Positions 3,204-46,255 of a stretch of 64,000 bases of DNA are shown in pieces (position 1 is the stretch's first letter; every line of letters begins with the position of its first letter). A program made the position numbers and the translations under genes. Source of the DNA: Malacoraja senta (Eukaryota); contig JAXLNO010005297.1 in assembly GCA_038087875.1 (NCBI GenBank), forward strand, positions 248,001 to 312,000, given 5' to 3'. Below the pieces are notes generated by a model. That model had not been told where the DNA came from. It searched no databases and saw nothing but the letters and a program-made list of their open reading frames with translations.

Positions 3204-4114
3204 CTAGACCCCGCGGCGCTGAATACATTTTCCAATCAGAGTAAAGGGCGATTTCACCACTCCTTTGAACTGCTGCCTGAACTTAGTCTGGGTGACGGCG
3301 TAAAGAGCAGTGTTTGTGCAACAACTCAGGGTCTGCAGCATGGCGGCCAGTTCGCCAATGTTGTAATCCGGATAATCCCAGCTACGAATTAATCCAGCCA
3401 GTCTGAACCACACAACATGTATCGCACGGAGCGCCCACAACAGGATGAAATTCCCCGAGATCACCAGCAGTAAAATGAGAGATTTCCTGCGGCTCTCCAT
3501 CTCCGGGTCTCTGCCACTCTCCCCACTGCTGGGACCCCGGAGTCTGCTGCGGGCTCTGCTCGCCACTAACACGTATCTGATGGTCGAAGTGTTGAATAAA
3601 ACAATGAGGACAAATGGGATCGCGGGGGTGATGAGATATTGGAGAAACTCCCCGATTCCCCAGACCAGTGAGGTACGAACATCGCCTGGAATCCCACAAA
3701 ACCAGGGGGCATTGAATAGCAAGTACCCACCGCGCAACATAAAATACCAGAACGTGTTCTTTAAACAGCTCAGCACGGTCACTGTCCCCAGAACCACATC
3801 CGCTGTTCTCTCGGTGCAATATTTTGTTTTCAGCTTCTGGCAACAAATGGCCACAAATCGATCAAAGGTGAAGGTGACGGTGAACCAGACAGAACAGTCG
3901 GTGACGGCGTAAAGCAAGACGGCGTGGATATTACACACTGGGACGTAGCGCAGGAACTGAAATGCACCATAGTAAGCAATGGGAAGCTGCCTCAGTATCA
4001 GGTCCAGAATAATGACCAGTAGATCGGCCGTTGCCATGGCGATCAGGTAGCGAGTGACACCTGTGGAGAGACCGCACTTTCCCCGGGACAGGACCACAAT
4101 CGTCAGCGCGTTCA
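3204..4114 (-). CDS. Gene A exon 2: GPR139/GPR142-like rhodopsin-family GPCR (intact, 361 aa when spliced)
   Basis: 7TM ORF with TM2 ADLL, TM3 FTFDRFVAICC, ICL3 DPEMESRRKS and TM7 CCTNTALY. Acceptor cttccctcttcacag|TG at 4115/4114, phase 1; stop TAG at 3204-3206. Confidence 0.92.
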
Positions 4115-5107
4115 CTGTGAAGAGGGAAGTAAACAGAGACATGACAGCGGACGAATCAAACTCGGCAGATTCATCAAGGGGCAAATAAAATGCACAATCC
4201 TGTTCTGGGATTCAGAGCTGTAAACGATTTTCTAACAAGGTTATCTACAAGTGATAATTCAACGAAATCAATTAGTGATGATAAAATAAACTCATCAACT
4301 CGACTACTTAACAGATGAGAAGCTGCTGTTACGAGGGTTCGGATAAAGAACTTGACCGATTTCTGACCATTGCTTACTTCACCATGGGAGTTTAGCTCAT
4401 TGGTTCACTGTGAATCGGGTTCAGTGTGGGCTGGAGAACAAACCCTCGTCCTGCTCTTTATGCAGGGACATTGTGTTAGTGTGAATCAATCAGCCCAGGG
4501 TTCTATTCATGGCCCAATGCGCCAGTGTCAGTCTGTTGGGGACAGAAATGGTTCCGATACGGAGCATTACGCAGACACAGTGATATTGGGCGAAACAGGG
4601 CCAGATCCCAGCAGGAACCGTTCGCTTCAGTCACACCTGGGAGGAGGAGGGATGCAAAGGAAAGCGTGTCAGTATCTCAAGATTGCATTAAACCAGTAAA
4701 ACATGTAAAACATGTAGAACTCCTATAAAATCAGTTTATTGTTTGCAGCGGACAGTTTCGACAGCTGCATATAGATCGCCAGGCGCACGGCAGCAGTGAA
4801 TTACAGCAGGAGAATGAATTACAGGAAATGGAAAGGTGTTAACGATTGTTTCCCGTTTTAATAACATTAACTGTGGACATGGTAGCAATGTAAAAATAAC
4901 ACGTATATAAGGTAAGCAACACGCTGATGAATAGCGTGAAACGTTTGATCCCCACAATCAGACAACATCAGCACATTACCCGTTACTCAGTCGAAGATTC
5001 CTTAAATAGAACACGTCATGGATTGTCCGAATTACAGACATTTATACCGGATCCCGTAACCGCCGCTTCTCACCTGATGTTGCTCGGGAATTTAGACAGA
5101 GACTTAC

Positions 5108-5282
5108 CTGGAAGAGCAACAAGAGCTAGGATGGGGTAATAGACAAGCTGAATATTCATGATTAACATATAGATCCGAACACCTAAGCTGTATCCAGACC
5201 CAAACATATCGTCTGCCGAATAGAACATACTCTTCTCCATCGCGGTAACTTCCCAGTCTACCGTTTTCAGAGACCGATCCAT
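5108..5282 (-). CDS. Gene A exon 1 (N-terminus + start of TM1: MDRSLK...VYYPILALVALP)
   Basis: ATG at 5282; donor CCAG|gtaagt at 5108/5107. 175 nt + 911 nt = 1086 nt in frame, giving ...ALPVNALTIVVL. An alternative downstream ATG (MEKSM) is possible. Confidence 0.85.
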
Positions 5283-6129
5283 TTGTGTAACACCGCACTC
5301 ACTGTTCCTCGATTGCACTCGGTGAGAATCACTTCACTCTCTAATATTCTCGGATTCCTAAACATCCATCTAACATCCCACTTTATTGTTCACAAATTCC
5401 GAATGGTTTTCTCCGTCTGTGGAGCTGTTGCTCTGTGTCGGTGACGGACGGGATGCTCTCCCTGACACTCTCATATCCTATCAACAGGGATCGTTTTTAT
5501 TGGAACTGGGAAACCTCCGGGGACACAACCGGGCTCCGTGCGGACTGACTTTAATTACACTCACTGAACAAACATCTACTGTTAACTCTTTTGTGTCCGG
5601 GCACAAAGTGCCTCACAGAAAGGGTCCCAGTCATCATGGGTGATGATAGCCATTATTTATGTTCTGTCGAGTGGACTGTTAGTGCCGGGGAGCAATCTGC
5701 AGGCCTGATAGAATCCGCACCATCTCTCCGCAATCTCAATAATCGCGAGCAGTAATCTGAAATCGGATTGTTCAGATTAATCGTTTCCATTGACGTGAGC
5801 ATGGAAGTGGAATTTCGGGAACCCTGAATCATTTAAACTAAGATCTTAATATAGAGGACAAGCATTAGAAAAGTCTATGTTATATATAATTATATTAGGG
5901 ATTTGGGGCCCAGCCAACAATTCTGTAATAAAGGCATCCATCAGATCGCTTTTAAAATATTGTCCTCTTACCTTGTCCTCCAACCGATGTCCTGTTGAAG
6001 ATGATATTCCGACCATGGACAAAAATGTCGATCTCTGCTCTCCGTCCCTTGTAACCTGATACATTTCTTTCAGGTGACTTCTCAACGTCCATGGCTGTAG
6101 GGAAGATGTCACGTTCTCCAATCTCTTGA

Positions 6130-6880
6130 GTCAGGAGTGTTTAATTGTCATATGTACAGAGAACTCAACAATATTTGTTTCTTGTAGCAGCGTAACACAT
6201 CTGTGAAGACAGCGCACACAGATAACACAAAGAACAAAATAAAGTTCAATAAGCTAAAATAATCAATATTTGAGCAAATCCAAAGCTGGAAGTCTCAAGC
6301 ACAAGCAACACTTTTTGTAGTTCATAGTTTAGTAAGTGTTTGTGGTGGTCAAGAGCCCGGTTGTTATGGAAAGAAACTGTTCCTGAAACTGAGGTTAGCA
6401 CAGTTTGCAGACTCCGATATTCTTTCTCGGAGTTTGGAAGGAAACAAGACCATGGACAGGGTGGTGAGGGTTCCAGATGATTGCTGGTTGCCATTTCATG
6501 ACACTGTCTCTTGCAGATCCATTAGATGGTGGATAGTTCAGGTGATGGATAGGACCGGTCGATGGCCACCACGTTTTTTAATCTCTTACATTCCTGGGCT
6601 TTCGAAGTGCCGAAACAGGCCCTGTGGCAATCATCCAATATGGTCTCTACCTTAGACGTGTAGAAGATCGAGAGAACATTCGTCACCACACAGATGAACT
6701 TTCTGGTCTAACAAAGTAATATCGGTGGAGTTTCTTTATGATTACATGAATTTGCTGGGTCCACGACAGATCGTCAGAAATATGCACGGCAAGGAACATA
6801 GAGTTGTTGACTCTATCCACCATAGAACCGTCGATGAAGACAGGTTAATCGATTCTCGGCCTTCCTCTTCTAAAATCAGC
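6130..6880 (-). mobile_element. Degenerate Rex1/Babar LINE 3' fragment (copy at ~31750-32420)
   Basis: 3' end gtttaattgtcat and the PSPP...KEYRSLQT...F region resemble the better preserved Rex1 at 58975-60390. Confidence 0.6.
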
Positions 6881-7040
6881 AATATACCGCATCGCAGCCA
6901 CTTGCCCATAGGAAACAAATTGACGAAGAGCGTGTGAGGTGTCTTGGATTGGACCAGGGGGATAGGATGGAGTCCAGATATGTGGAAATTAATTCAGTGG
7001 GGCATGAACACGCTGAAACAATGGGTCTACCAGGACAGTC
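6880..7040 (-). mobile_element. Penelope-like RT fragment
   Basis: Translation PGRPIVSACSCPTELISTYLDSILSP is typical of Penelope RT N-terminal part; copy at ~32420-32575. Confidence 0.7.
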
Positions 7041-7044
7041 AGAA

Positions 7045-7170
7045 GAAGCACGTAAGGACTGGGTGGCCAATGCTGTGCCTCTTTTCAAGAAGGGCTGTAG
7101 GGAAAATACGGGGAACTATAGGCCCGTAAGCTTAACATCTGTAGTTGGTAAGTTGCTGGAGAGCATTCTG
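7045..7170 (+). mobile_element. CR1 LINE ORF2 fragment
   Basis: DW..ANAVPLFKKG...GNYRPVSLTSVVGKLLESIL; truncated at the foldback element. Confidence 0.8.
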
Positions 7171-7172
7171 TG

Positions 7173-9365
7173 GGTACCCGGACGTGGCGCCGACAGACAA
7201 TAATCCGAACCAAAGAAGTCGAAGCCAAAGAACCGAATACAAACTAGCCGAAACGCCAATGAACCGAAATAGTCCGAAGACGAAACGCCTACTAACCGAA
7301 AGGATGGGACGCCTAAATGCAAACTAACCGAAAGGGACGCCTAAAAGCCAGCGAACCGAAAGGCTGCGTCGCCTAAAAGCGAACTTACCGAATGGCCGCT
7401 CTGTCGAAACGCCAACTACCCGAAAGGCGGCGGCGCCTACAAGCCAAAGGACCAACTGCCGCTCAACAGAAACGTCCAATAACGGACTTGACGTTGCCGG
7501 GGGGCGGGACTTGTCAGCGATTGGTCCAGACCCCCCACGTCCATCACATCACCGTGAAGGCACGAACAGTGTCCCAAACCTCCGCTCCACCCAACCCGCA
7601 GCCCGCGGAGCGTGGCCGTGGGAGAGTGGAGACTGTCCCGAGGGATGCACACGTTCGGCCGCTTTCAACTTGGTGCTTGGGTTCAGACTGCCCAGTCACC
7701 TATGTAAGAACGATTTATACATGCAATACATTATATACATTTTACATGGTTAATTAACTGGTGCATATCATGTATTGTATCATGTGATTTTCTGAAGGAC
7801 GGTCTGTACCCGCAACGTGACCCATTCCTTCTATTCATAGATGCTTCCTGCCCCGCTGAGTTACTCCACTGGGTTCAGCTGTCAGATGAAGAAGGCGAGA
7901 GGCCGCCATTGACCGTCGAAACACTGCTCCAGGACCCCGCCGACTGCGGAGTCCGAGGCATCCACGGTAAGAGCTGTGGGGCCGCCTGTTCGCGGGTGCA
8001 CCAGCATAACCGCCCCAGCCAGGGCATCCTTTGCCCTTCGAACGCAACGACGGTGTCCAAATGGACCTTCCGCTGCTTGCCAGTTGGAACAGCGGCCGTA
8101 TGACCTTAGCCGCCGCTGGGACGAACCGGTGGTCAAGAAGGAGGCAAAACCCTAACCTCTGCTCCAGTGTCCACCAGGAACCTACGTCCCGAGCGCCGGA
8201 CCCAGGCTTACAAACGATGGATTTCGCCGGCCACCGCGGTGCCTACCGGCGGCCGGCTCTGGAGTTTCCCTGAACGGATACGGTTGGCGACAATGGCCGC
8301 TGCCCCCCAGCGTTGTTGGTAAAATCACCACATCCTTCTCTCCTGTGCCACCTGTCTGGGTTGTGGCTCTCGTGGGCGTGGGCCTCTTGTGAGCGTGGTC
8401 CTGGGTTGCTGGGCGTTCCAGGGCGTTGAATCAATCCGGTCCAGCGACTCCAGCCGTTCCAGGTAATCCAGTCCCTGGTGGGACAGCCACCGCTCGTCGG
8501 CGCGCATCGCTAGTCTGAGCCGATCTTCAAAACTCTCCACCGTGCGGATGTCGGCGGATATCACGTGGCAACTGCTGCAGGTAGGTAAGTTCAAATAGAA
8601 GGCAGAGTAAAATAACAAACACAGAATGCTGGAGGAACTCCGCGGGCTAGACGGCATCTGTGGAGGGAATGGGTTAGGAGTTGTTTCGGGCCAGGATTCT
8701 TCTTCAATAGGAAGGAACTGGTGATGCAGNNNNNNNNNNNNNNNNNNNNNNNNNNNNNNNNNNNNNNNNNNNNNNNNNNNNNNNNNNNNNNNNNNNNNNN
8801 NNNNNNNNNNNNNNNNNNNNNNNNNNNNNNNNNNNNNNNNNNNNNNNNNNNNNNNNNNNNNNNNNNNNNNNNNNNNNNNNNNNNNNNNNNNNNNNNNNNN
8901 NNNNNNNNNNNNNNNNNNNNNNNNNNNNNNNNNNNNNNNNNNNNNNNNNNNNNNNNNNNNNNNNNNNNCTTATAAAAATAATCCGCTCTGTGATCTTTGG
9001 CGGTCTAAAAGCGGCGAAGGGAAATTAAACCCCCCCCCACCCTCCCGTCTCCCCTGGACAGCGATGTGATGGACGCGGGGGTCTGCACCAATCGCTGAGA
9101 AGGTCTCGGACGTCATGTCCATTATTTGTCTCCCGACGTGTTCGGTTAGTTGGCTTTTCGGCGTCGCGTCCGTTAGGTTATTTGGTTTTTCGGCGTCTCG
9201 CCCGTTCGGTTATTTCGCTTTTCGGCGCTGCATCCCTTCGGTTATTTTGCTTTTCGGCGTCGCGTCCGTTCGGTTATTTGGCTTTTCGGCGTCTATTCCG
9301 TTCGGTATCTTGGCTTCCACTTCTTCGCTTCGGCTTCTCATACTTCGACGCCCCGTTCGGGTACC
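7173..9365. mobile_element. Foldback/MULE-like element with long inverted arms and ~32-bp subterminal repeats (N-gap 8730-8968 inside)
   Basis: ggtacccggacgtggcgccga (7173-7193) vs reverse complement of 9345-9365 is 18/21 identical. ccgaa-rich repeats 7200-7490 mirror ttcgg-rich repeats 9140-9345, and 7515-7550 mirrors 9063-9095. Confidence 0.65.
7885..8400 (-). mobile_element. Internally deleted Gypsy/Ty3 gag-protease-RNase H fragment
   Basis: Degenerate gag end (FYQQRWG...QGNSRAGRR), protease FLVDTGAEVRVLP (~8145-8180) and RNase H TVDASDSAVGGVLEQ...WRPLAFF (7885-7975). Confidence 0.75.
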
Positions 9366-12661: not shown

Positions 12662-13286
12662 ACCCATTCCTTCTCTCCAGAGATGCTGCCTGTCCCGTTG
12701 AGTTACTCCAGCATTTTGTGTCTATCTTCAGTCTGAACAAGGATCCCGATCCGAAATGTCTTCTGTCCATTCCGTCCACAGATGCCCGCTTAGTTCCACC
12801 AGATAACTAATGTGCCCGCCACTGCAGCCCCGGAGTGTCACCGATCCGCGTGCTGCAGAAATGCTGCCTGACCCGCTGAGTTACTCCAGCACTTCGTACC
12901 AATCCACGTTCACCAGACATGCTGCCTGACCCAATGAGTTACTCCAGCACTTTGTAACTGTCTACGTTCTCCAGAGATTCTGCTTGACCCGCTGAGTTGC
13001 TCCAGCTCTTTGTGTCCTTCTCTTCTTAAAATATATTTTCATTCAGTTCAAGAGCTCTCACCAACCATAATCAATTACCTCGACATCAATTTTCGGGGCA
13101 ATAAGAAAACATAACTTTATTAACTGCCAGTTTCCAACCGCATCTTTAAAACGTGCTGTATGTGTTGTTGATATCCCAGAAATGCGATATTCCGCTGAAC
13201 ATTGGAATATTCCATTCCTACACTTTGATACATTGCCCAGTAGAGTATTCGGTGGGATTTTACGATCAGGAAATTCATATTCAATT

Positions 13287-13576: not shown

Positions 13577-14047
13577 TTGCAGTGATGTATCGTTGTGCAG
13601 CTTACTAGTTGCGGATATTCACCTTCGATGTTCGACCTTCATTGGAAAATGGCTACGGAGATGCCATTTCGGATGCATATTCTAAATGATCTTACGAAGT
13701 CGGCGTACCAGTCTTAAGCTACAATGTCATCTCGTCTTTCTATTGATTATTCTTGTCCAAATAGGATTTAAAGAGAACAAGTCGTTAACTAGACTACTTG
13801 CCTACACATTTAACAATCTGCTGCACTGGAGATTTTACCATGGTCTTCAATTCGTTTCTGAATTAGCTTTGGGTCACCGCATAAATAAATGTGTTAGTGC
13901 AGCAGCTCAGAAGAAGAAGCATGTAACCTGTTTCTTGGAGGATAAACAACGGGTCATTATATCCAGAGTAATAATACGTCTCGGTAATCCGAAAGTACAG
14001 GTAATTGACCGTGTATGTGAGCCATAGCAATATGAAGTTGCCGGATA

Positions 14048-14952
14048 GCTGTGAGGAGGATGCTAGGAGACTGCAAGGTGACTTGGATAGGCTGGGGGAG
14101 TGGGCAAATGTTTGGCAGATGCAGTATAATGTGGATAAATGTGAGGTTATCCACTTTGGTGGCAAAAACGGGAAGGCAGACTATTATCTAAATGGTGGCC
14201 GATTAGGAAATGGGGAGGTGCAGCGAGACCTGGGTGTCATGGTACACCAGTCATTGAAAGTAGGCATGCAGGTGCAGCAGGCAGTGAAGAAAGCGAATGG
14301 TATGTTGGCCTTCATAGCAAGAGGATTTGAGTATAGGAGCAGGGAGGTTCTACTGCAGTTGTACAGGGTCTTGGTGAGACCACACCTGGAGTATTGCGTA
14401 CAGTTTTGGTCTCCAAATCTGAGGAAGGACATTATAGCCATAGAGGGAGTGCAGAGAAGGTTCACCAGACTGATTCCTGGGATGTCAGGACTTTCATATG
14501 AAGAAAGACTGGATAGACTTGGCTTATACTCGCTAGAATTTAGGAGATTGAGAGGGGCTCTTATAGAAACGTACAAAATTCTTATGGGGTTGGACAGGCT
14601 AGATGCAGGAAGATTGTTCCCGATGTTGGGGAAGTCCAGGACAAGGGGTCACAGCTTAAGGATAAGGGGGAAATCCTTTAAGACCGAGATGAGGAAAAAC
14701 TTTTTCACACAGAGAGTGGTGAATCTCTGGAACTCTCTGCCACAGAGGGTAGTTGACGCCAGTTCATTGGCTATATTTAAGAGGGAGTTAGATGTGGCCC
14801 TTGAGGCTAAAGAGATCAGGGGGTATGGAGAGAAGGCAGGTACGGGATACTGAGTTGGATGATCAGCCATGATCATATTGAATGGCGTTGCAGGCTCGAA
14901 GGGCCGAATGGCCTACTCCTGCACCTATTTTCTATGTATCTATGTATCTATA
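14048..14952 (+). mobile_element. 5'-truncated CR1 LINE with open RT C-terminal frame, inserted in gene B exon 2
   Basis: Stop-free LQGDLDRLGEWA...[14 protein letters not shown]...RVVNLWNSLP to TGA 14853, 3' UTR, (TCTATGTA)n tail; possible ata TSD (14045-14047/14950-14952). Confidence 0.95.
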
Positions 14953-15653
14953 TACTGAAGAGCAGAATAATGGATTTCCTCCGGTTTTCCATTTCAGGGT
15001 CGGGGGAATTTTCCGCGCGCGCATTATCCCGCAACGCCTTGCGGACTCTGCTGGCCACGACGATGTACCTTACGGTCAGCGCATTCAGCAGCAAATTAAC
15101 AAAGGAGGGCAGGAACGGCGAGATGATGCAATCGAAGTCTGTAAAAGCTTGCCAGAAGGGTGAGTTGTGAAAATCTGACCTTCCACGGCAGTACCAGGGC
15201 AGGTTGTTGCTGAAATAAAGAGGGTCGTAGACAAAATACCAGGGGATGTTTTTCCAACAGCCCAACGCTGCCACGGTGCCCACAATATTAGCTGAAATTA
15301 TTTTGGTGCAGTATTTGGTTTTCAGGTTCTGACAGCAGATGGCGACAAAACGATCGAAGGTGAAGGCAACGGTCAACCAGACCGACGTGTCTCTGGATGC
15401 ATAGACCATCGGGGTCTTTATTCGACAGACCCAGGTGAGCGACAGGTAACTCCCGGGGAAGTAAATACCCGTGATGCGATGGAGTAGAACGCCGGTGATG
15501 ACCACGGTAAGATCGGACGCCGCCATGGCCACGAGGTAATGGGTGATGCACCTAGAAAGACCACACTTCCCCCGCGACAGGATCACAATAGCCACGATGT
15601 TAACTGTGTTGAATGCAGAAGCAAACACAAGTTATTGTTACGGGTTGCGTTGG

Positions 15654-16810: not shown

Positions 16811-17749
16811 TGATGCCCTACCCTCTATACATCTTCATTGAAAAACACTTACTTTGAAATTATTCCCTCCCCTCAAGTTTCCCTTTAACAGAGAACCCTC
16901 CATTCAATCCACCCATCCCGTGCGAAATCGGAAATAATGTTAAACCCTCTTAGGTCTTTAAATGTAAGAAGCACATAAAATGAATATATCATAGATTCGG
17001 TCTTGCGTAAACATCATACCGAATGAACGTGATAATCCTTTCATCGTAAAAAAAATCTGAGAAGATTTTGCAATTTCTTTAATCCAATATTCACTTGATG
17101 AGAAAAAAAAATCCATAGCATTTCACAGAATATATGCAATAAACTGTCCAGACACTCGGATTATTTAACAAGATAAAGATCAAGATCGCATATTAAATCA
17201 GGTTTATATAACATGGTTTAATACCTGGGATCCCAAGAGCGGCCAAGATCGGATAATATATTGCATACACTGGGCCACTAGGGGGCTCATGCATCTTAAA
17301 CTGTATTACAGTTCCTCTGCCTGGATATATGATCTGGAAAGCAGTTTAAATATCTATCATAAAATCCCCAGTGATAACAATGGATTGAATGATTAGTGTC
17401 GTCAGTTCTACCCGTTTGCACAATCAAATTGGGAGAGCTAATATTATCACGTGCGAGTTGATCAGTTTGTTGGCACGTGATCAATGCAGAATACAACTTT
17501 GTTATTTCAAGGGGCAATCAACCCGAAAATGGAAGATGGAAGATGGCGCCATGACGCGCCTAATGTGAGTCTAAGCCTGAATCCGAACTCAGGACGTACG
17601 TGATACCGCCACTGACCTGGTGGCGAGAGGAGGCTGTGAAAATTCGATGATCCGCAGAGCGTTCAATTCCCCTTTACACAGGAAATTCGTGGTGCACAGG
17701 AAGAGGCAAGTCAAGTCTGTACCGATTCTAAATATGACCAACACAGCGA

Positions 17750-23800: not shown

Positions 23801-23807
23801 TTCTATT

Positions 23808-25873: not shown

Positions 25874-26921
25874 TAGGTATGTTACAATACTTACCTTCAG
25901 CGGCGCTGCAGTTCTGCCACTGGCCGTGTGCGTGACTTTGGCGCCTTTGAGGGTGGGGAGGGGGGTGCGGGGACTAAAATGCCGTTTTCTCCTGCCTGTC
26001 GGAGTCGATCCTTCTCAGGCTGTTAAGCTGCTGAAGAATAATCGACCCGACGCGTTCTCGGAAGTAAAAAAAAAAAATCGCGACCCAATTTAATCCCTGA
26101 AGTAAAATAAAAAAGCTACTTCTAACGCCGTCATCGCCGACAACGGGACGGATCTCACGTAGAGGACAAAACATAAGGTACGTCGTTTATTTTACATATA
26201 AACTTGTTTCTTAGGATTACTTTAATCCAAATTTCATTGGCGAAAATGTGATTATGGCCCCATACGAACCGGAAGTGTTTTTCCTGCCGATATGGGGTTC
26301 AAATTCACCGCAAACCGCAACGTTCCAAATGACCGCGTTCCACAAAATGTGACTCGCAAGATGATTTAAATGCCCATTAATTTATGGGAATTAAACACTA
26401 AATTCCTTCCATTTGGCCTATAAATTCATGACACTGAGATTAAAAAATCATGTTATATTGTGAATTATTGTGTGAATCTTATTTGGACACTCAGGCTATT
26501 TAAAATGTTATCCTTTTCTTAAGAAGTTGATAGATGTTTAGATCTAGTAATTGAATTTTGTAATTAGCTACAATTAGGTAACTAACTAATTATTATGCTT
26601 TCATTTCAGGTCATCCAAGTAAGATTGTTTCATATTTGCTTCAGAATTACTTCAATCTATAATAACTGAAAATGTCATTCAGTTCTCTTAATTTTTAAGA
26701 AATATATGGGCTTTTGACTGTCCTCGATCACAGCTTTTGAGTTAAGCCAATGGAAAAGCAATAGGGAACAAGATGCTAATTTCAGAGTATGGCCATAACT
26801 TTTTTTAATACTGAAGATATGAAAGTGAATTAGGTGTCAAATTAAACTTCTTTTTATGCTTTATCTGATGGGTAAATTGCAGACTTGATTTTTAAAATCT
26901 CAAAATTTTGTGACATTGCTA
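25874..26921. mobile_element. ~1.05-kb non-autonomous TIR DNA transposon (hAT-like TAG termini)
   Basis: taggtatgttacaa vs inverse of ttgtgacattgcta; flanks attaattg(ta) / attaagtg(ta) form an imperfect 7-9 bp TSD. Confidence 0.5.
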
Positions 26922-27361
26922 TTAAGTGTATATTCTCCGCTTACATTGAACTTCCCAAAGGATGGTGGAGGTTTTGCGAGTGATTGTTAGTAATCTCAGG
27001 CTCAAATTTATGTTCTACCATTATTGATCCTCCCTCAGAGAATCACCGCACAATCAGGGTGAACCAGAAAGCAGGACACACATTGGAAGTAGCAGGATTA
27101 CATTCCATTGCCATTGCCATTGCTCTAACTAATTTACCAACGAATCACCATCACACTACAGGAATAGTTCATATAATTAAACTCATGATTACATTCAATC
27201 ATGTCATTGAGAAATAATCAATGGTGTAATTAACCGAATGAAAGATGAACTAACTAAACTTAAACTAAACAAACTAATAACAATCAGAAATTATGGACGA
27301 ATAATCAGATGGATATAAATCCAGATATCGCATTGACAGTAGTTGCATTGACAGTATCGCA

Positions 27362-27985
27362 TTGACTCTTCACACCCACCACCCCACTCCACACACATCA
27401 CCCACACGCCCACCACCACTCCACACACACACTCCACCCCATACATTCACCACCCCACACATACCACCACCCCACCCCACACACGCACTCCACCCCACAC
27501 ATATCATCACCCCACCTCACACTACACCGTCTCACATATATCACCCACACGCCCACCACCACTCCACACACCCACTCCACCCCACACACTCCCCACACCA
27601 CACACACTCTCCTCACACACACATAATCCCACATACATGTCCCGCCCCCACACCCATATAACCATTCCACCCCCCACACACACAGTCACCACCCCCCACA
27701 CACACAATCCCACATCCACCACATCCACCACACTCACATACCCACTTCACACCCCCACACACACCCACCNNNNNNNNNNNNNNNNNNNNNNNNNNNNNNN
27801 NNNNNNNNNNNNNNNNNNNNNNNNNNNNNNNNNNNNNNNNNNNNNNNNNNNNNNNNNNNNNNNNNNNNNNNNNNNNNNNNNNNNNNNNNNNNNNNNNNNN
27901 NNNNNNNNNNNCGCCCATACCCATTCCACCCCCCCCCCCGCGCACACATACACAACCCCACTTCCGCCACACACTACCCCACAGG
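27362..27985. repeat. CA-rich low-complexity repeat spanning N-gap 27770-27911
   Basis: Paralog of 1576-2370. Confidence 0.9.
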
Positions 27986-28826
27986 CACAAGTGCCATGTA
28001 TTTGAAACGTTATTCAGAGAGATATGTTTACCTCACGGACACGGTGGATAGAACAGACTGTATTATACGCCTTATGGTAAGTCGCGGGAAATTTGATAAC
28101 CCGGGAAAACGGACGTAGACACGGCATCAGGACGAAACTCCCACCTAAGGCAGTGACGGGATGTGTGCATTCAGCAGCAAGAGTGAGAGAATGAGACAGG
28201 AGCTCAGTCAGACGCACGGGGTGGGTATGTAATCCGTCAACTAATCAGAGAGAATATATCTCATTTTACCCTGTCCTGACACTTGCTATGAACGACTGCA
28301 TGCGAATCTGCTCCTGTTTTTGACCTCATGCATTCCACTCCGTATCGACAGAGGATATTTGGATCGAGTTCAGTCGCATTGGTGCACAGACCGAATGACT
28401 GAGCATTTTATATTTAGCAACAAACTGTTGGGATTCTCATTTCGAAAGAATGCGAGCTGATTTACCATTTGGCATTCACTGGTCTTTAATGGAGCGAGTC
28501 TGTGAAGAGACGGACCTGAGTCAGTGTGACAGCAGCGCCGGCGTAATCCCGCTCAACATAGAGAGGCAGCGGCAGACAGACCGCTCCTCCTCGTGGCTGC
28601 CGCGGGGAATGGCAGCTCTGCGTCGGCAGTGGCTGGGGCAGCGAGCGGTTTGGTGGGGCAGTTTGGTGGGGCAGTTTGGTGGGGCAGAAGAAGAGATCCT
28701 CTTGTTGGAATCGGAAGACATATTAGGGTCACAAATGCCATCTGTGGATCAGGTCACTGAGGATCCAAAGCGTGTCGGGGAGTGAGGGGGGAGGGTGAGC
28801 AGATGGGATGGAGAGGGCACGGATTC

Positions 28827-29737
28827 CTAAACCCCGCGGCGCTGAATGCATTTTACAATCAGAGTAAAGGGCGATTTCACCACATCTTTGAACTGCTGCC
28901 TGAACTTAGTCTGGGTGACGGCGTAAAGAGCAGTGTTTGTGCAACAACTCAGGGTCTGCAGCATGGCGGCCAGTTCGCCAATGATGGAATCCGGATAGTC
29001 CCAGCTACGAATTAATCCAGCCAGTCTGAACCACACAACATGTATCGCACGGAGCGCCCACAACACGATGAAATTTCCCGAGATGACCAGCAGTAAAATG
29101 AGAGATTTCCTGCGGCTCTCCATCTCCGGGTCTCTGCCACCCTCCCCACTGCTGGGACCCCGGAGTCTGCTGCGGGCTCTGCTCGCCACTAACACGTATC
29201 TGATGGTCAAAGTGTTGAATAAAACAATGAGGACAAATGGGATCGCGGGGGTGATGAGATATTGGAGAAACTCCCCGATTCCCCAGACCAGTGAGGTACG
29301 AACATCGACTGGAATCCCACAAAACCAGGGGGCATTAAATAGCAAGTACCCACCGCCCAACATAAAATACCAGAACGTGTTCTTTAAAAAGCTCAGCACG
29401 GTCACTGTCCCCAGAACCACAGCCGCCGTTCTCTCGGTGCAATATTTTGTTTTCAGCTTCTGGCAACAAATGGCCACAAATCGATCAAAGGTGAAGGTGA
29501 CGGTGAACCAGACAGAACAGTCGGTGACGGCGTAAAGCAAGACGGCGTGGATATTACACACTGGGACGTAGCGCAGGAACTGAAATGCACCATAGTAAGC
29601 AATGGGAAGCTGCCTCAGTATCAGGTCCAGAATAATGACCAGTAGATCGGCCGTTGCCATGGCGATCAGGTAGCGAGTGACACCTGTGGAGAGACCGCAC
29701 TTTCCCCGGGACAGGACTACAATCGTCAGCGCGTTCA
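28827..29737 (-). CDS. Gene C exon 2: GPR139/GPR142-like GPCR (intact paralog of gene A)
   Basis: Same 911-nt exon, acceptor at 29738/29737, DRF and TNTALY motifs; 11 aa differences from gene A exon 2. Confidence 0.92.
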
Positions 29738-30729
29738 CTGTGAAGAGGGAAGTAAACAGAGACATGACAGCGGACGAAGCAAACTCGGCAGATTCATCAA
29801 GGTGCAAATGAAATGCACAATCCTGTTCTGGGATTCAGAGCTGTAAAAGATTTTCTAACAAGGTTATCTACAAGTGATAATTCAACGAAATCAATTAGTG
29901 ATGATAAAATAAACTCATCAACTCGACTACTTAACAGATGAGAAGCTGCTGTTAGGAGGGTTCGGATAAATAATCTGACCGGTTTCTGACCATTGCTTAC
30001 TTCACCATGGGAGTTTAGCTCATTGGTTCACTGTGAATCGGGTTCAGTGTGGGCTGGAGAACAAACCCTCGTCCTGCTCTTTATGCAGGGACATTGTGTT
30101 AGTGTGAATCAATCAGCCCAGGGTTCTATTCATTGCCCAATGCGCCAGTGTAAGTCTGTTGGGGACAGAAATGGTTCCGATACGGAGCATTACGCAGACA
30201 CAGTGACATTGGGCGAAACTGGGCCAGATCCCAGCAGGAACCGTTCGCTTCAGTCGCACCTGGCAGGAGGAGGGAGGCAAAGGAAAGCGTGTCAGTATCT
30301 CAAGATTGCATTAAACCAGTAAAACATGTAAAACATGTAAAACTCCTATAAATCCCTTTATTGTTTGCAGCGGACAGTTTCCACAGCTGCCTATAGATCG
30401 CCAGGCGCACGGCAGCAGTGAATTACAGCAGGAGAATGAATTACAGGAACTGGAAAGGCGTTAACGATTGATTCCCGTTTTAATAACATTAACTGTGGAC
30501 ATGGTAGCAATGTAAAAATAACACGTATAAAAGGTAAGCAACACGCTGATGAACAGCGTGAAACGTCTGATCTCCACAATCAGACAGCATCAGCACATTA
30601 CCCGTTACTCAGTCGACGATTCCTTAAACAGAACACATCATTAATTGTCCGAGCTACAGACATTTATACCGGATCCCGTAACCGCCGCTTCTCACCTGAT
30701 GTTGCTCGGGAATTTAGACAGAGACTTAC

Positions 30730-30904
30730 CTGGAAGAGCAACAAGAGCTAGGATGGGATAAAAGACAAGCTGAATATTCATGATTAACATATAGATCCGA
30801 ACACTTAAGCTGTATCCAGACGCAAACATATCGTTTGCCGAATAGAACATACTCTTCTCCATCGCGGTAACTTCCCAGTCTACCGTTTTCAGAGACCGAT
30901 CCAT
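30730..30904 (-). CDS. Gene C exon 1
   Basis: ATG at 30904; donor CCAG|gtaagt at 30730/30729; 175 nt; 4 aa differences from gene A exon 1. Confidence 0.85.
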
Positions 30905-32579
30905 TTGTGTAACACCGCACTCACTGTTCCTCGATTGCACTCGGTGACAATCACTTCACTCTCTAATATTCTCGGATTCCTAAACATCCATCTAACATCC
31001 CACTTTATTGTTCACAGATTCCGAATGTTTTTCTCGGTCTGTGGAGCTGTTGCTCTGTGTCGGTGACGGACGGGATGCTCTCACGAACACTCTCATATCC
31101 CATCAACAGGGATGTTTTTATTGGAACTGGGAAACCTCCGGTGACACAACCGGGCTCCGTGCGGACTGACTTTAATTACACTCACTGAACAAACAACTAC
31201 TGTTAACTCTTTTGTGTCCGGGCACAAAGTGCCTCACGGAAAGGGTCCCAGTCATCATGGGTGATGATAGCCATGATTTATGTTCTGTCGAGTGGACTGT
31301 TGGTGCCAGGGAGCAATCTGCAGTGCTGATAGAATCCGCACCATCTCTCCGCAATCTCAATAATCGCGAGCAGTAATCTGAAATCGGAATGTTCAGATTA
31401 ATCGTTTCCATGGACGAGTGCATGGAAGTGGTATGTTGGGAACCTTGAATCATTTTATCTGACATCTTGATATAGAGAACAGGCGTTAGAAAATTAAATA
31501 AACGGACAGGCACCATGAGTTATATTTATATAAGGGATTTGGGGCCCAGCCAACAATTCTGTAATAAAGACAACCATCAGATCGCTTTTAAAATATTTTC
31601 CTCTTACCTTAAACCGATGTCCTGTTGAAGATGACATGGATAAAAAAAGTCGATCTCTGCTCTCCGTCCCTCGTATCCTGATACATTTCTTTCAGGTGAC
31701 ATCTCAACGTCCACGGCTGTAGGGAAGATGTCACGTTCTCCAATCTCAAGAGTCAGGAGTGTTTAATTTTGATATGTACAGAGAACTCAACAATATTTGT
31801 TTCTGAAAGCAGCATAACACACCTGTGAAGACAGCGCACACAGATAACACAAAGAACAAAAGAAAGTTCAATAAGCTAAAATAATCAATATTTGGGCAAA
31901 TCCAAGGCTGGAAATCTCAAACACTTTCCCAGTACATAGTTTAGTTGGTGTTTGCGGTGGTCAAGAGCCCTGTTGTTATGGAAATAAACGGTTCCTGAAA
32001 CTGGCGTGAGCACGGTTTGCAGACTCCGATATTCTTTCTCGGAATTTGGAGAGAAACAAGACCACGGACAGGGTGGTGAGGGTTCCAATTGGTTGCTGGT
32101 TGCCATTTCATGACACTGCCTCTTGCAGATTCATTAGATGGTGGATAGTTCAGGTGATGGATAGGACCGGTCGATGGCAACCACGTTTTTTAATCTCCTA
32201 CATTCCTGGGCTTTCAAAGTTCCGAACCAGGCCCTGTGGCAACCATTCAATATGGTCTATACCTTAGATCTGTAGAAGATCGAGAGAACATTCGTCACCA
32301 CACCTATGTCCTTTCTGGTCTAACAAACTCATTGAACCGTCGATGAAGACAGGTTCTTGGTTCTTGGTTCTTGGGAAAGTTAATCGATCCTCGGCCTTCC
32401 TCTTCTAAAATCAGCAATATACCACATCGCAGCCACTTGCCCATGGGAAACAAATTGACGAAGAGCGTCTGAGGTGTCTTGGATTGGACCAGGGGGTAGG
32501 ATGGAGTCCAGGTAGGTGGAAATTAATTCGGTGGGCCATGAGCACGCTGAAATAATGGGTCTACCAGGACAGTCAGAAG

Positions 32580-34148
32580 AAGCACGTAAGGACTTGGAGG
32601 CAAATGCTGTGCCGCTTTTCAAGAAGGACTGCAGGGAAAATACGGGGATCTATAGGCCAGTAAGCTTAATATCTGTAGTTTGGTAAGTTGCTGGAGAGTA
32701 TTCTGAGGGATAGGATATGAATGAATGAATGAATGAATGAATGAATGAATGAATGAATGAATGAATGAATAAGTTTATTGGCCAAGTAATCACATATAAG
32801 GAATTTGCCTTGGTGAATTTACAGAGATTTGGATGGGCAAGTGCCAATTAGGGACAGTTAGCATCGTTTTGTATGTGGGAGGTCTTGTCTCACGTGTCTG
32901 ATTGATTTTATTAAAGACTTGAGCAAAAAGGTTGATGAAGGCAGAGCTGTTGATGTTGTGTACATGGACTTTAGTAAGGCGTTCGACAAGGTGCCGCATG
33001 GTAGGCTGCTCTGGAAGGTTAGATCTTATGGGATCCAAGGAGAGATAGTAGAATGGATTGGAAATTGGCTCCATGTAAGGAAGCAGAGATTGATGGTGGA
33101 AGGTTGCTGCACAGAATGAAGGATTGTGACTAGTGCCGTGCCACAGGGTTCGGTGCTGGGCCCGTTACTGTTTGCCATCTACACCAATGATTTGGATGAC
33201 AACATACAGGGCAAGATTAGCAAGTTTCCTGATGATACAAAAGTTAGTGCTTTTGCAGATAGTGAAGATGGTTGTGAACGATTGCAGCAGGAGTCGGATC
33301 GATTGGCCAGGTGGGCACTGGAATGGTTGATGGAATTTAATACAGAGAAGTGTGAGGTGATGCATTTTGGGACGTCGAACAAGGGCAGGACCTAAGCAAT
33401 AAATGGCAGGCCTCTTGGTAGTGTTGTAGAGCAGAGTGATCTAGGAGAACAAGTGCATGGTTCCTTGAAGGTCGAGTAGCAGGTAGATAAGGTGGTCAAA
33501 ATGTCTTTTGGCACTTTGGCCTTCTTCAGTCAGGGTATTGAGTATATAAGTTGGGAGGTCATGTTGCAGTTGTGTCAGACGTTGGTGAGACCACATATAG
33601 AATATTGTGCTCAATTCTGGGAACCATGTTATAAGAAATATATTGTCAAGCTTGAAAGTGTTCCGAAAAGATTTCCGAGGGTTGCCAGGACTAGAGGGAG
33701 TGAGTTCTAGGGAGAGATTGAGTATGCTGGGTCTCTATTCCATGGAGCGTAAGAGGATGAGGGGAGATCTTATAGAAGTATAGAAAATCATGAGATGAAT
33801 AGATCGGGTTGATGCACAGACTTTTACCCAGAGGAGGGGAATCGAGGACCATGGGAAATAGGTTCAAGGTGAAGGGGATAAGATTTAATAGGAATCCGAG
33901 GGGTAACTTTTTCACATAGTGGGTGTATGGAACAAGCTGCCAGAAGAGGTAGTTGAAGCTGGAACTATCCCATCATTTAAGAAACAGTTGGACAGATACA
34001 TGGATAGGACTGGTTTGGAGGGTTATGGGCGTGTGGCTCAGGGACGCAGGGAAGTGTGGCTCGGATAGCTGGGACATTGTTGGCCGTTGCGGCCGTGTTG
34101 GGCCGAAGGGCCTGTTGCCTCACTGTATTACTCAATGACTCTATGAGT
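32580..34148 (+). mobile_element. Degenerate CR1 ORF2 (RT to 3' end), interrupted by a (TGAA)n-tailed insert at ~32717-32815
   Basis: DVVYMDFSKAFDKVPH, VPQGSVLGPLLF, KFPDDT, LVRPHIEYCAQFW. Confidence 0.9.
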
Positions 34149-36725: not shown

Positions 36726-37479
36726 CCCTTACACACCCCGCTCCCATCCTCTCCTCCGACACATGAAGAGGAATGGGAGGGAGTGCAGGCGGATGAGGAA
36801 AAGTGAGCCGTGGTGGAGTGGTGGAATATTGCGTTGGGGAATGGGTTGCGTTGCGTGACCAGGCCTCCGGTGCAACGGGTCCTAGTGGAGACCCAGTGGA
36901 GGCCCAGTGGAGGCCCTGGTCCCGTCTCACTCTCCCTCATCACTCACCCCTCTCCCCTGCACGCCATCTGCGGTAATGGCGGTCCCGTCTACCCGTTCCC
37001 CCGGGACCGTCTCCTTCGCCGCCGCCGTTGCAGTAAGTCACCCTCACAGCCTTCTCGGAGGAGATCTTCTCCACCAGCTCTTCGATAGTCATGATGCAAA
37101 CCGTGACGAACACCGACTCCATCCCTTCACCCTCCCTCGCGGCCCGGCGGCGTCAGCGAGCATGCAGGGAGGTAGGCGGGTGGGCAGGGCGTGGAAGGGC
37201 CGATCGGCAGCAGCGGGCGGTCGGGCTGGGCGGGGACGTGTCTAGCGTCAGGCGCGGGTAGTCTGACAGGACAAAGGCGGGATGAGCGGCGGCTGAGCTG
37301 GAGTGGGCAGAATGATGGAGGGAGAGTCGGGTTGCCGGGTGGCCAAGCAGTTTGCCCGGAGTTTCAGTTTACTCTCTCTCACGCACGATGCAAACTGTTC
37401 CAATCGTCATGTCAACGGGATCTAAACCACATCTGACAATGAATGACCTGTGGAGGAAGGAACTGTAGATGCTGTTTTA

Positions 37480-38294
37480 TGTGGATATAGTGAGGTAGGG
37501 AGGGAGTGAGGGTGGGAGGGCGGCAGTGAGGGAGGTAGGGAAATAGGGAGGGAGGGAGGGAGGGAGGGAGGGAGTGAGGGAGGGAGGGAGGGAGGGAGGG
37601 AGGGAGGGAGGGAGGGAGGGAGGGAGGGAGGGAGGGAATGACAGAGGGTAGTGGAAAGTAGATGGAGGGAGAGGCGAGGGAGGGATTGGGGGAGGGAGGA
37701 GGAGAGGGGACCGATCCTGGGGAGGTGAGGAGGGAGGGTGGGGGGATTGAGAGTGGAAGGGGTAAGGAGGGAGAGGGGGAATGGGGGGTGAGGATAGTAG
37801 TGGAGGATGGAGAATGTAGGGAGAGGAGGGGGTGGGGGAATTAGGGAGTTGGGAATAGAGGGACAGGAGAGTAATGAGGGGGGAGGTCAGGAGGGATAGT
37901 GTGGAGAAAGTGGGAGGTGAGGTGTGAGGGTTGGGGGTATAGGAAGGGGGTAGGGAGGGGAGAGGAGTTATGGAGGGAGGGAGGGAGTGATTGAGGGTAG
38001 GGGAAAGGAGAGGGAGGGAGAAGTGAGGGTGGGGTTGGGAGAGGAGAGGAGGGGAGGAGGATAGGGGAACGAAGAGGGAGTGTGATGAGGAGTGGGAGGG
38101 AGTGCTGGAGGATGAGGGGAAATGAGCCGCACCTGCGCAGTTGGGGGCTATGCGTGAGTGGTGCAATATTGCGTTTGGGGAACAGGTTGCAACAGGGGAA
38201 CGGGTGAGTGGTGGAACATTGCATTGGGGAACGGGTTGCGTTGGGGACCAGTCCTCAAGTGTGACAGGTACCCAACGGGTACCCACTTCGCTAG
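37480..38294 (+). mobile_element. Possible non-autonomous Helitron carrying a (GGGA)n/purine-rich tract
   Basis: 3' hairpin ggtaccc-aac-gggtacc (38267-38283), then CTAG (38291-38294) followed by T; a related 3' end lies at 36760-36886. Confidence 0.4.
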
Positions 38295-38295
38295 T

Positions 38296-38825
38296 AATAT
38301 TCCAAAGGCCAAACCAGCGCATTATGGAATGTGAGCATTTCATCCCTGTTTTTGTATACAACCCTCTTGAAATAAATGCAAGCATTGAATTTGCTTTCTT
38401 TACAACTGATTCTACTTGCAGATTAATATTTTGGGAATCCGCCCCCAGCACTCACAAGTCCCTGAGCACATCCGATTTCTGGATTCTCTCCCCATTTAGA
38501 AAATAGTCTATGCCTTTATACCTACTACCAAAATGCATGAGTCCACACTCTGCTACTCTATATTCCATCTGCCACTTGTATGCCCACTCAACCAACCTTG
38601 CCAAATCCTTCTGCAGGGTCCCTGCTTTCTGTAACATGCCTGCTCCTCCACCTATTTTCGTGGTATCCGCAAACATGGCTACAAAGTCTTCAACCCCCTT
38701 GTCCAAAATCATTCATATATAACGTGAAGGGTAGCGGCTGCATCGCCGACATCTGCAGAACTCTGCTAGTCACTGGCAGCCAATAGGAAAATCGGTCTTT
38801 ATTGCCATTCTTTGCCTTCTGCCAC
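38296..38825 (-). mobile_element. CR1 RT fragment
   Basis: MFADTTKIGG...LQKDLARLVEWAYKWQM; VKKANSMLAFISRG. Confidence 0.85.
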
Positions 38826-38829
38826 GCAA

Positions 38830-42845: not shown

Positions 42846-45169
42846 TCATTAAGATGGGGGGGGGGGATTTAATAGGAATCTGTTGCGTAACCTTTTCACA
42901 GAAAGGGCAGTGGGCATATGAAACAATCAGCCGCATGGGTAGTTGAGTCAGGGACTATACCAACGTGTAACAACATTTAACACCAGGGGGCGCCGCACGA
43001 TGGCAGCCTCGTCAACAGTCTGTCTGTTTTTTCGTCTGTTTTTTGTTTGCAGTGTGTTTTTAAGATATGATTCAATGTTCTTTGGTTTGTTTTATGTGGG
43101 GGTGGGTGAGGTTGTCGGGGGAAACCCTGTTCAATCTCTTACCTTGCCAGAGATGCGATAAGTTTCCGGATAGACCTCCGGTCGCTCCGCGGTATAACAT
43201 CATGGTGATGGCGGCCTTGCTCGTTACTAACTTTGAGCCCCACCGCGACGACGTGGCTTACCATCGGAGCAGATCCTTGCCTGGGATCGACGCTCCAACC
43301 GCGGCCTGCAGATTTCACCATCGAGGAGCTCGCAGTTTCGGGTAGAGACCGATGTCGGGAAGCTCCAAACGACGCAGAAGGTTTCGACCCAACCCGCCCC
43401 GGGGTCAGATCGCCCAGAGCGGAGGAGCTGAGATTCCCCCTTATGCAGGAGCTTGATCGCCCCGACGCGGAGGGCGCAAACGTAGGCGGTATTCCCCGTA
43501 TGTTGCAAAACATATTTGGATAATAAAGAATTATTGTGATTATTATTATTATCGTGTAAGAAACAGTTAGGCATGTACATGGATAGGAGAGGTTTGGGGA
43601 GATGCGGTCCAAACGCGAGCAGATGGGACGAGTGGTGCTGGAAAATGATGGCCGTTAAGGAAAAGATTGGCCAAACGGCCTATTTCCACGCTGTATCACT
43701 CTACGACTTTATGACTCGCTGACATATTTGAAACATCAGGTGGAATCGGGGTCTCCGCAAACATGAGAGCTTGGAGGGAGTTGTACCAGGGTGCTGCAAA
43801 AGATGGTTTCTGCTGTCTGCGGGGATAGTGCTCGTGCTCTTTAAACTGGAGGGAAATGAGTGTGGGCTATGTTTGAGGTTCACAAAACGACGAGTACTGT
43901 TGTGAGACTGGGCACTTGAGAAACATATCGCTTTAGCACAGGTGTCCATAATCGGAGTTCAGACGCTACAGGTGATGGTTATGTGGGCATTTAAGTAACG
44001 ATTACGCCACCCACTCTGAGCTTCAGTTATACAACGCATTGCCCGATTTGCTAATGGATCTCGGCACTCACAACGCTTTGAAAAACAATATCTAGATGAC
44101 CACATGAAACGCAATGACAATTAAATCCGAGTGATGGAAAAATGGAGGTGCAGATTGCTACATGATGGATCGCATTGACACATTGGGCAGAATGCCCTGC
44201 TTTTGCATTTCATGTACGTGTAACCCTGACACCGGTTAGCTCAGGAGAATATCTGCAAACCAATCTGCAATCTTTGTTAACCAGAGACATAGGCAGGACC
44301 TACACAGGGGTTAATAAACAATACGATGTATTCAAACATAAGAACCCGAGGCGCAACACATTTATTCAGACGGTGGTGGGACGAGCTGCCGGAGGTACAG
44401 TCCATGAAGCTTCCATTCGACGTAGTTGTTCCATCTCCCTCCAATCCTTTCCTCTCCGTGTACTTGTCCTGGTGTTTGTAATTGCAGAGGCGGACCACTG
44501 GGTGGTAGTTTCCCCCACACATTAGGACCTCCTGTAATTACAGGGGCGGGCCACTGGGTGTGAGTGTCGGACGTACATTGTGGTTGCTCAAATAGTGATG
44601 CACCAATAACGATCAATCTTTGCTACTCTGTTTCACTCAGATCTCTCCCTGGTAATTTAAAACGGAGATCGACAGATTCCGGATTTGAGAGGGTGTCATA
44701 GTTAACGGAGCGAATGCAGGAGAATCCGGTTGAGCGAAGTAGATTCGATGGACCGAACGGCATAATTCAGCTTCTTTGACATGAATTTATGAAGCCTTTC
44801 CTATCCATTTATCTGTCCGAATGCCTTGTAAATTTAGTTTACGTTTGTTTAACTTTTAATAACGAGGGAAGAGGAAGTAGGAGAATAGCGTTGAGAGGGA
44901 AAGATAGGTCAGCCAATATTGAATGGTGGAGTAGTCGATGGGCTGAATGGCTTAATTCTGCTCCTTTGACTTGTGAGTATGTGCTTAAACCTCTTATCCT
45001 AATAGCGGCTTCGGCAGTGCAGGAGATGTGCGGCGGTGGTGGTGGGGAGGAAACGCTGGGCGGCGCTGTCCGCGCGGAGGGCGAAGGCGAGCGAAAGGTC
45101 CCTTCCTCTCCAGGAGCCGGGGAAGAGGGGACGCCCTTCCCCAAAAAAACTAAATTAAACTGCTCTGTA

Positions 45170-45354
45170 TTGAACTAAACTAAACTAAACTAAACTGTTC
45201 TGAACTAAACTAAACGAAACTATACTAGACCGATCTCAACTCAACCGAATTCAACTCAACTTAAGTCAACACAACCCAACTCAACCCAAACCAACCCAAC
45301 CCAACCCAACCCAACCCAACCCAACTCCACCCAAACCAACTAAACCCAACTGAA
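45170..45354. repeat. Compound pentanucleotide microsatellite (TAAAC)n/(CCAAC)n
   Basis: Directly visible; abuts the gene D stop codon. Confidence 0.9.
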
Positions 45355-46255
45355 TTAAACACACTTAGCAACCTGACGGAACGGGAACATTAACATTGTC
45401 TTCAGCTGATCTCTGAATTTACTCTGGGTCACTGTATAAATAAATGTGTTGGTGCAAGAACTAAGCAGCATAAGCATATTTCCCGCTTCTTCAAGAATAA
45501 ACACCGGATCATTGTATCCGGAGTAAGTATAAGTTCTAGTGATCCGAAAGTACAAATAATGCACTATGTTCGTCAGCCAGAGCAAGATGAAGTTGCCGGA
45601 AATGCTGAATAGTAAAATGATCGACTTCCTGCGGTTCTCCATCTCGGTGTCAGGACCTTTGCCGGGGAGCGCGTCATCCCGCAATGATTTGCGGATTCTG
45701 CCGGCGACGATGATGCGTTTTGCTGTCAGGAAATTCAGGAACAATATAACCGCGAACGGTAGCAGGGGTGTGTTGACGCGATTAAAATGTATGAGTAAGT
45801 TCGCCACCACGGCGAGGTATAAAAGCTTGGAATTATCCGACAATACTGGGGGAGGTTGTCCTCGATGTAAAGGGGTTCGTAAATGAAAAACCAGCCGAAA
45901 TTCTTTAAACAGCTCAAAGCTACAACCGTGGCGACGACGGCCACTGCCGTTTCTTTGGTACAGTACTTGCGTTTACAGTTGCGACAACAAATGGCCACGT
46001 ACCGATCGAAGGTGAAGACCATGGTGAGCCAGACGGAGGCGTCGGTGCAGACATAAAGGAGATAATTCTTGATGCGGCAGACCCAGGTGAGCGACATGTA
46101 ACTGTGGGGAAAGTAAATTCCGACGATGCATTGTAGAATTACACCGATGATGACCACTGTCAGATCCGTCGCAGCCATGGCAACCAGGTAGAGAGTGATA
46201 CACCTGGATAGACCGCACCTCCCCTGCTACAGGACCACTATGGCTACAATGTTAA
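45355..46255 (-). pseudogene. Gene D: GPR139-like GPCR pseudogene, exon 2 (same subfamily as gene B)
   Basis: Acceptor cccaacag|TT at 46256/46255; in-frame TAG at 46227-46229 (VL*QGRCGLS vs ILSRGKCGLS); frameshift near 45790-45800 joins ORFs 45735-46178 and 45355-45843; FTFDRYVAICC, DTEMENRRKS, TNTFIY. Exon 1 not found. Confidence 0.88.

Follow-up and report, generated by a model that had tools for sequence, protein, structure and literature searches.

A 64,000-nt stretch of the skate Malacoraja senta genome (GCA_038087875.1, JAXLNO010005297.1, positions 248,001 to 312,000 of the forward strand; hereafter the window, in whose own numbering coordinates are given) contains four genes for class A G protein-coupled receptors (GPCRs), which we call A, B, A' and B' in their order along the sequence. 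The best explanation, to which we assign a probability of roughly 0.7, is that these genes form a tandem cluster from a large receptor family of cartilaginous fishes, distantly related to GPR139 and GPR142, whose members are diversified ligand sensors. Sharks and rays have acute chemical senses and very few canonical odorant receptors (ORs). A class A family that is expanded only in cartilaginous fishes, with thousands of members annotated but unstudied, is an obvious candidate for the missing sensor repertoire; alternatively, it may be an expansion of immune or neural receptors of a new type.

All four genes lie on the minus strand and together span 3204-48445. Each has two coding exons and gave a Pfam 7tm_1 match (E 1.4e-17 to 8e-9), and A and A' exceed the PF00001 gathering score (57.7 and 64.5 bits, respectively, against a cut-off of 30.5). 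We located exon 1 of each gene by tblastn with homologue N-termini and read the junctions directly from the sequence. Gene A comprises exon 1 at 5108..5240 (44 codons plus 1 base, with the donor CCAG/GTAAGT, where the slash marks the junction) and exon 2 at 3204..4114, which has the acceptor context CACAG/TGAAC, carries the 7tm_1 match and runs from the end of transmembrane helix 1 (TM1) to the stop codon (3204-3206); the intron is 993 bp. Gene A' has exon 1 at 30730..30862 and exon 2, an open frame with a 7tm_1 match, at 28827..29737, with splice sites identical to those of A and canonical GT..AG in both. The spliced coding sequences (CDSs) of A and A' are both intact, at 1044 nt and 347 amino acids, and the two proteins differ at 15 residues. 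An in-frame upstream ATG at 5282, 42 nt upstream, would extend gene A by 14 residues, and these optional residues resemble the N-terminus of a horn-shark homologue (P0017). The motifs RG(K/R)CGLS, FTFDR(F/Y)VAICC, D.EME.RRKS and TNT..Y are present in all four genes. These gene models and Pfam matches agree with an initial annotation, made from the sequence alone, that had described four same-strand, two-exon class A GPCRs with common motifs. It had also placed a phase-1 intron at P/V-N in TM1 of every copy; the phase is indeed common to all four, the intron interrupting TM1 after its proline and before the V/I-N of N1.50, but the junction is P/V-N in three genes and P/I-N in B'. Its end point for the cluster, 46255, was too short, as exon 1 of B' (48376..48445) falls beyond it.

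The cluster belongs to a very large family. A protein search with A' returned 2423 proteins at E<=1e-5, and a search with B returned 2106 at E<=1e-10; the best 240 matches listed are all from sharks or rays and represent about 20 genera. Their automatic names are mostly "probable GPR139," and some members carry unrelated ones. When sequences representing clusters at 50% identity were searched exhaustively, 114 clusters matched at E<=1e-30. Copies are thus far from few, the cartilaginous fishes together having >2,000 distinct proteins. In our trees, an A-type clade (support 100) and a B-type clade (support 99) each contain both sharks and rays; therefore, the A/B split predates the shark-ray split. 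Callorhinchus has at least four members, which are nested inside the family. The expansion had initially been put forward as a candidate lineage-specific family, which proves too narrow a description: members are found in sharks, in rays and in Callorhinchus, and relatives of low diversity exist in the coelacanth, salamanders and teleosts. Two coding exons with a TM1 intron are also found in loci of the skate Rhinoraja and in one shark contig. When contigs from sequencing runs were compared with the window, summed contig depth was 50-150-fold higher over the conserved motifs at 3784-3935 and 4012-4163, which fits many paralogues and is not a copy number. A metagenome contig with family members (L003) was considered as a transcript and rejected as genomic, with the intron and acceptor present; a Logan contig with family members was likewise checked as a possible transcript. 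A protein-atlas search returned only "probable GPR139" clusters and nothing further, and for literature on this chondrichthyan expansion we found no searchable paper, only a note on "GPR210" (PMC6504862).

Several comparisons point to GPR139 as the nearest characterised receptor. When A' was compared with 177,635 distinct PDB sequences, the single match was human GPR139 (E 2.4e-9). A family profile scored GPR139 at 94 bits and the next receptor, NTSR1, at 63, a 31-bit lead, and in a fold search of the Swiss-Prot portion of the AlphaFold database, GPR139 was the top match at 21-22% identity. All top Foldseek matches are class A receptors; apart from GPR139, the fold is generic and peptide-receptor-like. 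Among the PDB, Swiss-Prot and database matches listed, none indicated affinity to OR, TAAR or ORA/V1R families, and GPR139 came first, followed by peptide receptors. Identity to human GPR139 is 21-25% (40 bits). GPR139 itself is a single-copy, two-exon gene whose human and zebrafish versions share 70% identity (PMC7318219). Taken together, these similarities indicate that the skate genes are GPR139-like, as they had been labelled initially, and distant relatives of the GPR139/GPR142 group. They are not GPR139 orthologues, since a single-copy gene conserved at 70% from human to zebrafish stands against 21-25% identity and thousands of members here. Nor do they appear to fall inside a known peptide-receptor clade (the trees were built without canonical GPR139 or GPR142). 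Residues of the GPR139 agonist site are F109 (3x33), H187 (5x43), W241 (6x48), R244 (6x51) and N271 (7x38), of which H187 and N271 are required for agonist action (PMC5430874). At these positions the skate genes have Y at 3x33, W at 6x48, R at 6x51 in A and A' only, and A or G at 7x38, and H187 is not conserved. Thus, the amino-acid or peptide ligand originally proposed for the family is not inferable, with only the aromatic residue at 3x33, W6x48 and, in A/A', R6x51 retained.

We next consider how variation is distributed over the receptor. As a structural reference we used the AlphaFold2 model of the 82%-identical Rhinoraja orthologue (P0001; pLDDT, the model's confidence score, 89.4), which has seven helices plus helix 8 (H8) and which we split into extracellular and intracellular halves. 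Across 100 shark and ray members, N1.50, D2.50, DRF, W6.48 and Y7.53 vary little or not at all, with NPxxY present as the variant NTxxY, and both cysteines of the pair joining C3.25 to extracellular loop 2 are conserved. Also near-invariant are SRGKCGLS in intracellular loop 1 (ICL1), FTFDRFVAICC at TM3/ICL2, DPEMExRRKS in ICL3, and the TM7/H8 segment. Column entropy in the same 100 members is 1.78 bits in the extracellular half and 0.86 bits in the intracellular half (p = 6e-17). In comparisons with the Rhinoraja orthologue, the nonsynonymous rate (dN) is 0.16-0.185 in the extracellular half and about 0.053 in the intracellular half, a 3-fold difference, and the dN/dS ratio (omega) is 0.5-0.7 and about 0.3, respectively. 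Both contrasts bear out the earlier impression of divergent extracellular parts. One pocket position, 6.51, is R in A and A', H in the Rhinoraja orthologue, and F, L or Y in other A-type members. Whole-CDS omega against the same orthologue is 0.43 for A and 0.50 for A', values that indicate moderate purifying selection on both genes. A near-invariant intracellular side combined with a variable pocket side fits a common signalling partner and diverse ligands, although the pattern does not identify those ligands.

Gain and loss are both evident in the cluster. Self-BLAST revealed a segmental duplication with 90-94% nucleotide identity, of which copy 1, carrying A, occupies 1..7174 and may reach left of the window, and copy 2, carrying A', occupies 26007..32709. 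The CDSs of A and A' are 97.6% identical, compared with about 94% over the duplicated block as a whole, and their pairwise dN/dS is 0.51. In the trees, A and A' are sisters adjoining the Rhinoraja orthologue, to which they are 87.5% and 87.3% identical, respectively. B and B', by contrast with this recent pair, share only about 75% identity, and the trees put them in separate ray subclades, B clustering with Rhinoraja and Narcine and B' with Amblyraja and Leucoraja. The order A, B, A', B' noted initially therefore does not reflect a duplicated AB unit: A and A' arose by a recent duplication of ~7 kb, and B and B' are older members of a second subfamily. Within 3263-3664, two DNA sequencing runs from another individual (X1 and X2) contain an A-like copy with A'-type letters at 3443 and 3462 and A-type letters elsewhere; such a mosaic is suggestive of gene conversion involving the two duplicates. 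A CA/CCAC-rich low-complexity tract lies ~0.9 kb downstream of A and A' (1373-2157 and 27157-27769), and in the two copies the assembly is interrupted at one and the same paralogous position.

Both B-type genes are dead, and the mapped lesions, together with the intact spliced frames of A and A', uphold the initial assignment of two intact A-type and two dead B-type copies. Pseudogene B has exon 1 at 17225..17294 (minus strand; 23 codons plus 1 base, with a very short N-terminus beginning MHEPPSG) and an interrupted exon 2. The first part of exon 2 (14951..15603, minus) extends from the end of TM1 to the start of TM6, where the reading frame breaks after LLFSI at 14951; it picks up at SGNFILLW at 14045 in the second part (13794..14045, minus), which runs from TM6 to the end. 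Between them, in plus orientation, lies a 905-bp 3' fragment of a long interspersed nuclear element (LINE; 14046..14950), a multi-copy sequence with an open reading frame (ORF) resembling a reverse transcriptase tail at 14005-14853. A second lesion, an in-frame TAA at 13863-13865, falls in helix 8. The orthologous locus of Rhinoraja longicauda (L001, CM130205.1) is continuous across the insertion site (AGTATA/TCCGGC) and has no LINE fragment; hence the insertion is specific to the Malacoraja senta lineage. The Rhinoraja orthologue has a stop of its own at the NxxxY tyrosine (TNTFI followed by the stop, L001 about 13,950). As the lesions differ, the B lineage decayed independently in two skates. 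The gene annotation behind the Rhinoraja protein P0121, which ends at this stop, probably describes a pseudogene. Pseudogene B' has exon 1 at 48376..48445 (minus; placed by tblastn and direct reading) and exon 2 at 45355..46255 (minus), with a TAG at 46227-46229, between VVL and QGRCGLS, and its frame shifts somewhere from 45772 to 45791. There is also an exon-1-like relic (48195..48245, minus, with YRPVLAALGVP) that has no start codon. In line with the initial view of duplication and pseudogenisation dynamics, the cluster thus combines a recent A/A' copy with the deaths of B and B'. The LINE 3' unit, a discrete segment of ~0.9 kb, recurs many times in each of the two skate genomes, its copies being 80-92% identical, and includes those at L001 3-740, 2203-2833, 5616-6516 and 10811-11711 and at L002 13234-14134 and 17121-18015. 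These copies stop at one common 5' point, which is not random truncation, and the copy in the window has a 282-amino-acid open frame with no Pfam match. Downstream of B there is a 58-bp tandem repeat (12844-13013), which is kept, and is longer, at the corresponding Rhinoraja position (L001 15354-15919).

These observations led us to consider what the family might do. It evolves by local duplication and loss. We propose that its members would be G-protein-coupled sensors acting through one common intracellular signalling partner, and that they may have diversified toward many different ligands, probably small ones. A chemosensory repertoire in the broad sense, with expression in olfactory, oral, skin or solitary chemosensory cells, is a reading drawn from this evolutionary mode, and we hold it at slightly below even odds; the other odds are spread over an immune-cell role, a neural or endocrine role, and a largely redundant one. 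More tentatively still, the family could constitute an unrecognised chemosensory repertoire of hundreds of genes per shark or ray genome, derived from a GPR139-like nutrient sensor. Several points weigh against this picture of the cluster and its family. Omega is below 1 throughout, so positive selection is not demonstrated, and GPCR families in general commonly vary more on their extracellular side. The trees took in no canonical GPR139 or GPR142 sequences. Our searches of sequencing runs listed no run recorded as RNA that contains these genes: the two best runs, X1 and X2, have contigs that extend across the intron and are therefore DNA, and two runs of possible RNA origin offered one piece of 184-240 nt from the most conserved segment, with 5-11 mismatches, which is uninformative on expression. 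In the catshark, which has 2 OR and 6-7 OR-like genes and V2Rs as the main olfactory family, a study that examined only the four classical families found the 50 genes most specific to the olfactory library to include no GPCR (PMC11979771); this result carries little weight either way.

Immune receptors, too, would fit the birth-and-death dynamics and the elevated omega, and some of the automatic NCBI names are chemokine-receptor-like or GPR15-like. It is therefore worth considering whether these genes are an immune-cell repertoire, consisting of chemoattractant-like or danger-sensing leukocyte GPCRs that diversify under pathogen pressure. However, no RSS-flanked T-cell receptor V segment lies in the window, and in mammals OR genes are also found next to T-cell receptor loci yet have no immune role. 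Sequence and profile searches point to GPR139 and not to chemokine receptors, and we know of no vertebrate leukocyte GPCR family this large, so that we regard an immune role as unlikely. A second possibility is that the genes are brain or endocrine receptors which keep the sensing of aromatic amino acids or POMC-type peptides found in GPR139/GPR142 and have been multiplied and subfunctionalised. The proximity to GPR139, the two-exon gene in both (PMC7318219), the aromatic 3x33, the conserved W6x48, and R6x51 in A/A' are what would be expected of such receptors. Yet GPR139 has remained a single, 70%-conserved gene (PMC7318219), which is hard to match with thousands of members at 21-25% identity; the agonist-essential H187 and N271 (PMC5430874) are not retained, and R6x51 is replaced in most members. 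We find this possibility less likely again than an immune role.

Two further alternatives concern the cluster itself. With two of four genes dead, the B lineage lost independently in two skates, LINE and long terminal repeat (LTR) fragments abundant in the region, and omega fairly high at 0.43-0.51, the cluster might be mostly redundant DNA, produced by segmental duplication in a repeat-rich region and drifting to pseudogenes with little organismal function. The A/A' pair speaks against this, its 347-codon frames and splice sites being intact despite ~6% flank divergence and its CDSs being 97.6% identical where the flanks are at about 94%; moreover, omega is well below 1 (about 0.3 in the intracellular half), and the intracellular motifs are near-invariant over 100 shark and ray members. 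Of the alternatives weighed here, we judge this the least probable. The A/A' pair might instead be an assembly artefact in which two divergent haplotypes of one gene were scaffolded in tandem. The assembly gaps, all of them runs of N (2158-2287, 8730-8968, 27770-27911 and 49215-49415), are placed between genes and touch no exon or intron, but scaffolding alone determines the order of the genes and the distances separating them. The 6.4-kb contig that carries gene A (2288-8729) is flanked by gaps, a gap interrupts both copies at the same simple repeat, and in runs X1 and X2 the A' letter alone is found at some of the sites that distinguish A from A', which gives a mosaic pattern. On the other hand, the 6-10% divergence far exceeds allelic levels, and homology stops within both contigs (at 7174 and 32709) and not at gaps. 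Both letters also occur roughly 1:1 at sites 3685 and 3734 in both independent DNA runs, and A and A' are about equidistant from the Rhinoraja orthologue. An artefact thus appears improbable, if not quite as improbable as redundancy.

If the chemosensory interpretation of the receptor family holds, it would help explain how rich chemical sensing is achieved with a handful of canonical ORs. The family also shows that relatives of the slowly evolving, single-copy nutrient-sensor lineage GPR139/142 have changed over to rapid birth-and-death evolution. The locus described here is an ordinary example of the family. Its contribution is a recent, dated duplication, gene death by two independent routes, and parallel orthologue decay in two skates. 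The proposal is directly testable, as the little skate is a laboratory model.

The surrounding sequence contains repeats of several kinds. Degenerate pol remnants of an LTR retroelement, with RNase H and integrase core domains, lie at 19512-22048 on the plus strand. An AT-rich LINE (GC about 0.30) at 52703-58204, also on the plus strand, has a coiled-coil ORF1-like frame and an RVT_1 domain and is broken up into several open frames; it looks younger than its surroundings. A GC-rich (0.60), low-complexity region at 35768-38451 is proline/serine-rich, contains (GAGG)n repeats and yields ORFs on either strand that are long but spurious. Scanning the window for heptamer-spacer-nonamer signals, together with a Y-x-C test, revealed no T-cell receptor V segments, and there was no Rfam match at the gathering threshold anywhere in it.

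Like GPR139, the genes of the skate family have two exons (exon count being what was compared), and proline is absent at 7.50 in both, the corresponding motif being NTxxY in the skate family and NFFLY in GPR139. In both, position 3x33 is aromatic and 6x48 is W, and A/A' match GPR139 in having R at 6x51. The two also differ: GPR139 is present as a single copy and the chondrichthyan family has thousands of members; sequence identity here is 21-25%, compared with 70% between the human and zebrafish GPR139 orthologues; omega in the chondrichthyan family is 0.4-0.5; H187 and N271 of the agonist site are not retained; and SRGKCGLS, FTFDRFVAICC and DPEMExRRKS are specific to the chondrichthyan family.

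Like the OR, TAAR, ORA/V1R, T2R and MRGPR families, the skate family is large, is arranged in tandem clusters and has frequent pseudogenes, and it combines conserved intracellular motifs with variable pocket positions and short N-termini. It differs from them in having no sequence affinity to any of them and in its coding intron in TM1; the coding regions of ORs, TAARs, ORA/V1Rs, T2Rs and MRGPRs are mostly single-exon. The nearest relatives outside the chondrichthyans are "GPR139-like" orphans of bony vertebrates (Latimeria XP_005988539 and sequences from salamanders, Odontesthes and Engraulis), at 115 bits and 31-32% identity, which branch directly outside the chondrichthyan family in our trees. 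Published "GPR210A/B" clades have been placed near GPR139/142 (PMC6504862), and these orphans probably correspond to them. Like the skate genes, the orphans have GPR139 as their best match (53-70 bits), yet they are not GPR139, and they carry N-M-x-x-Y at TM7. Whereas the orphans form few 50%-identity clusters, the chondrichthyan family forms >110.

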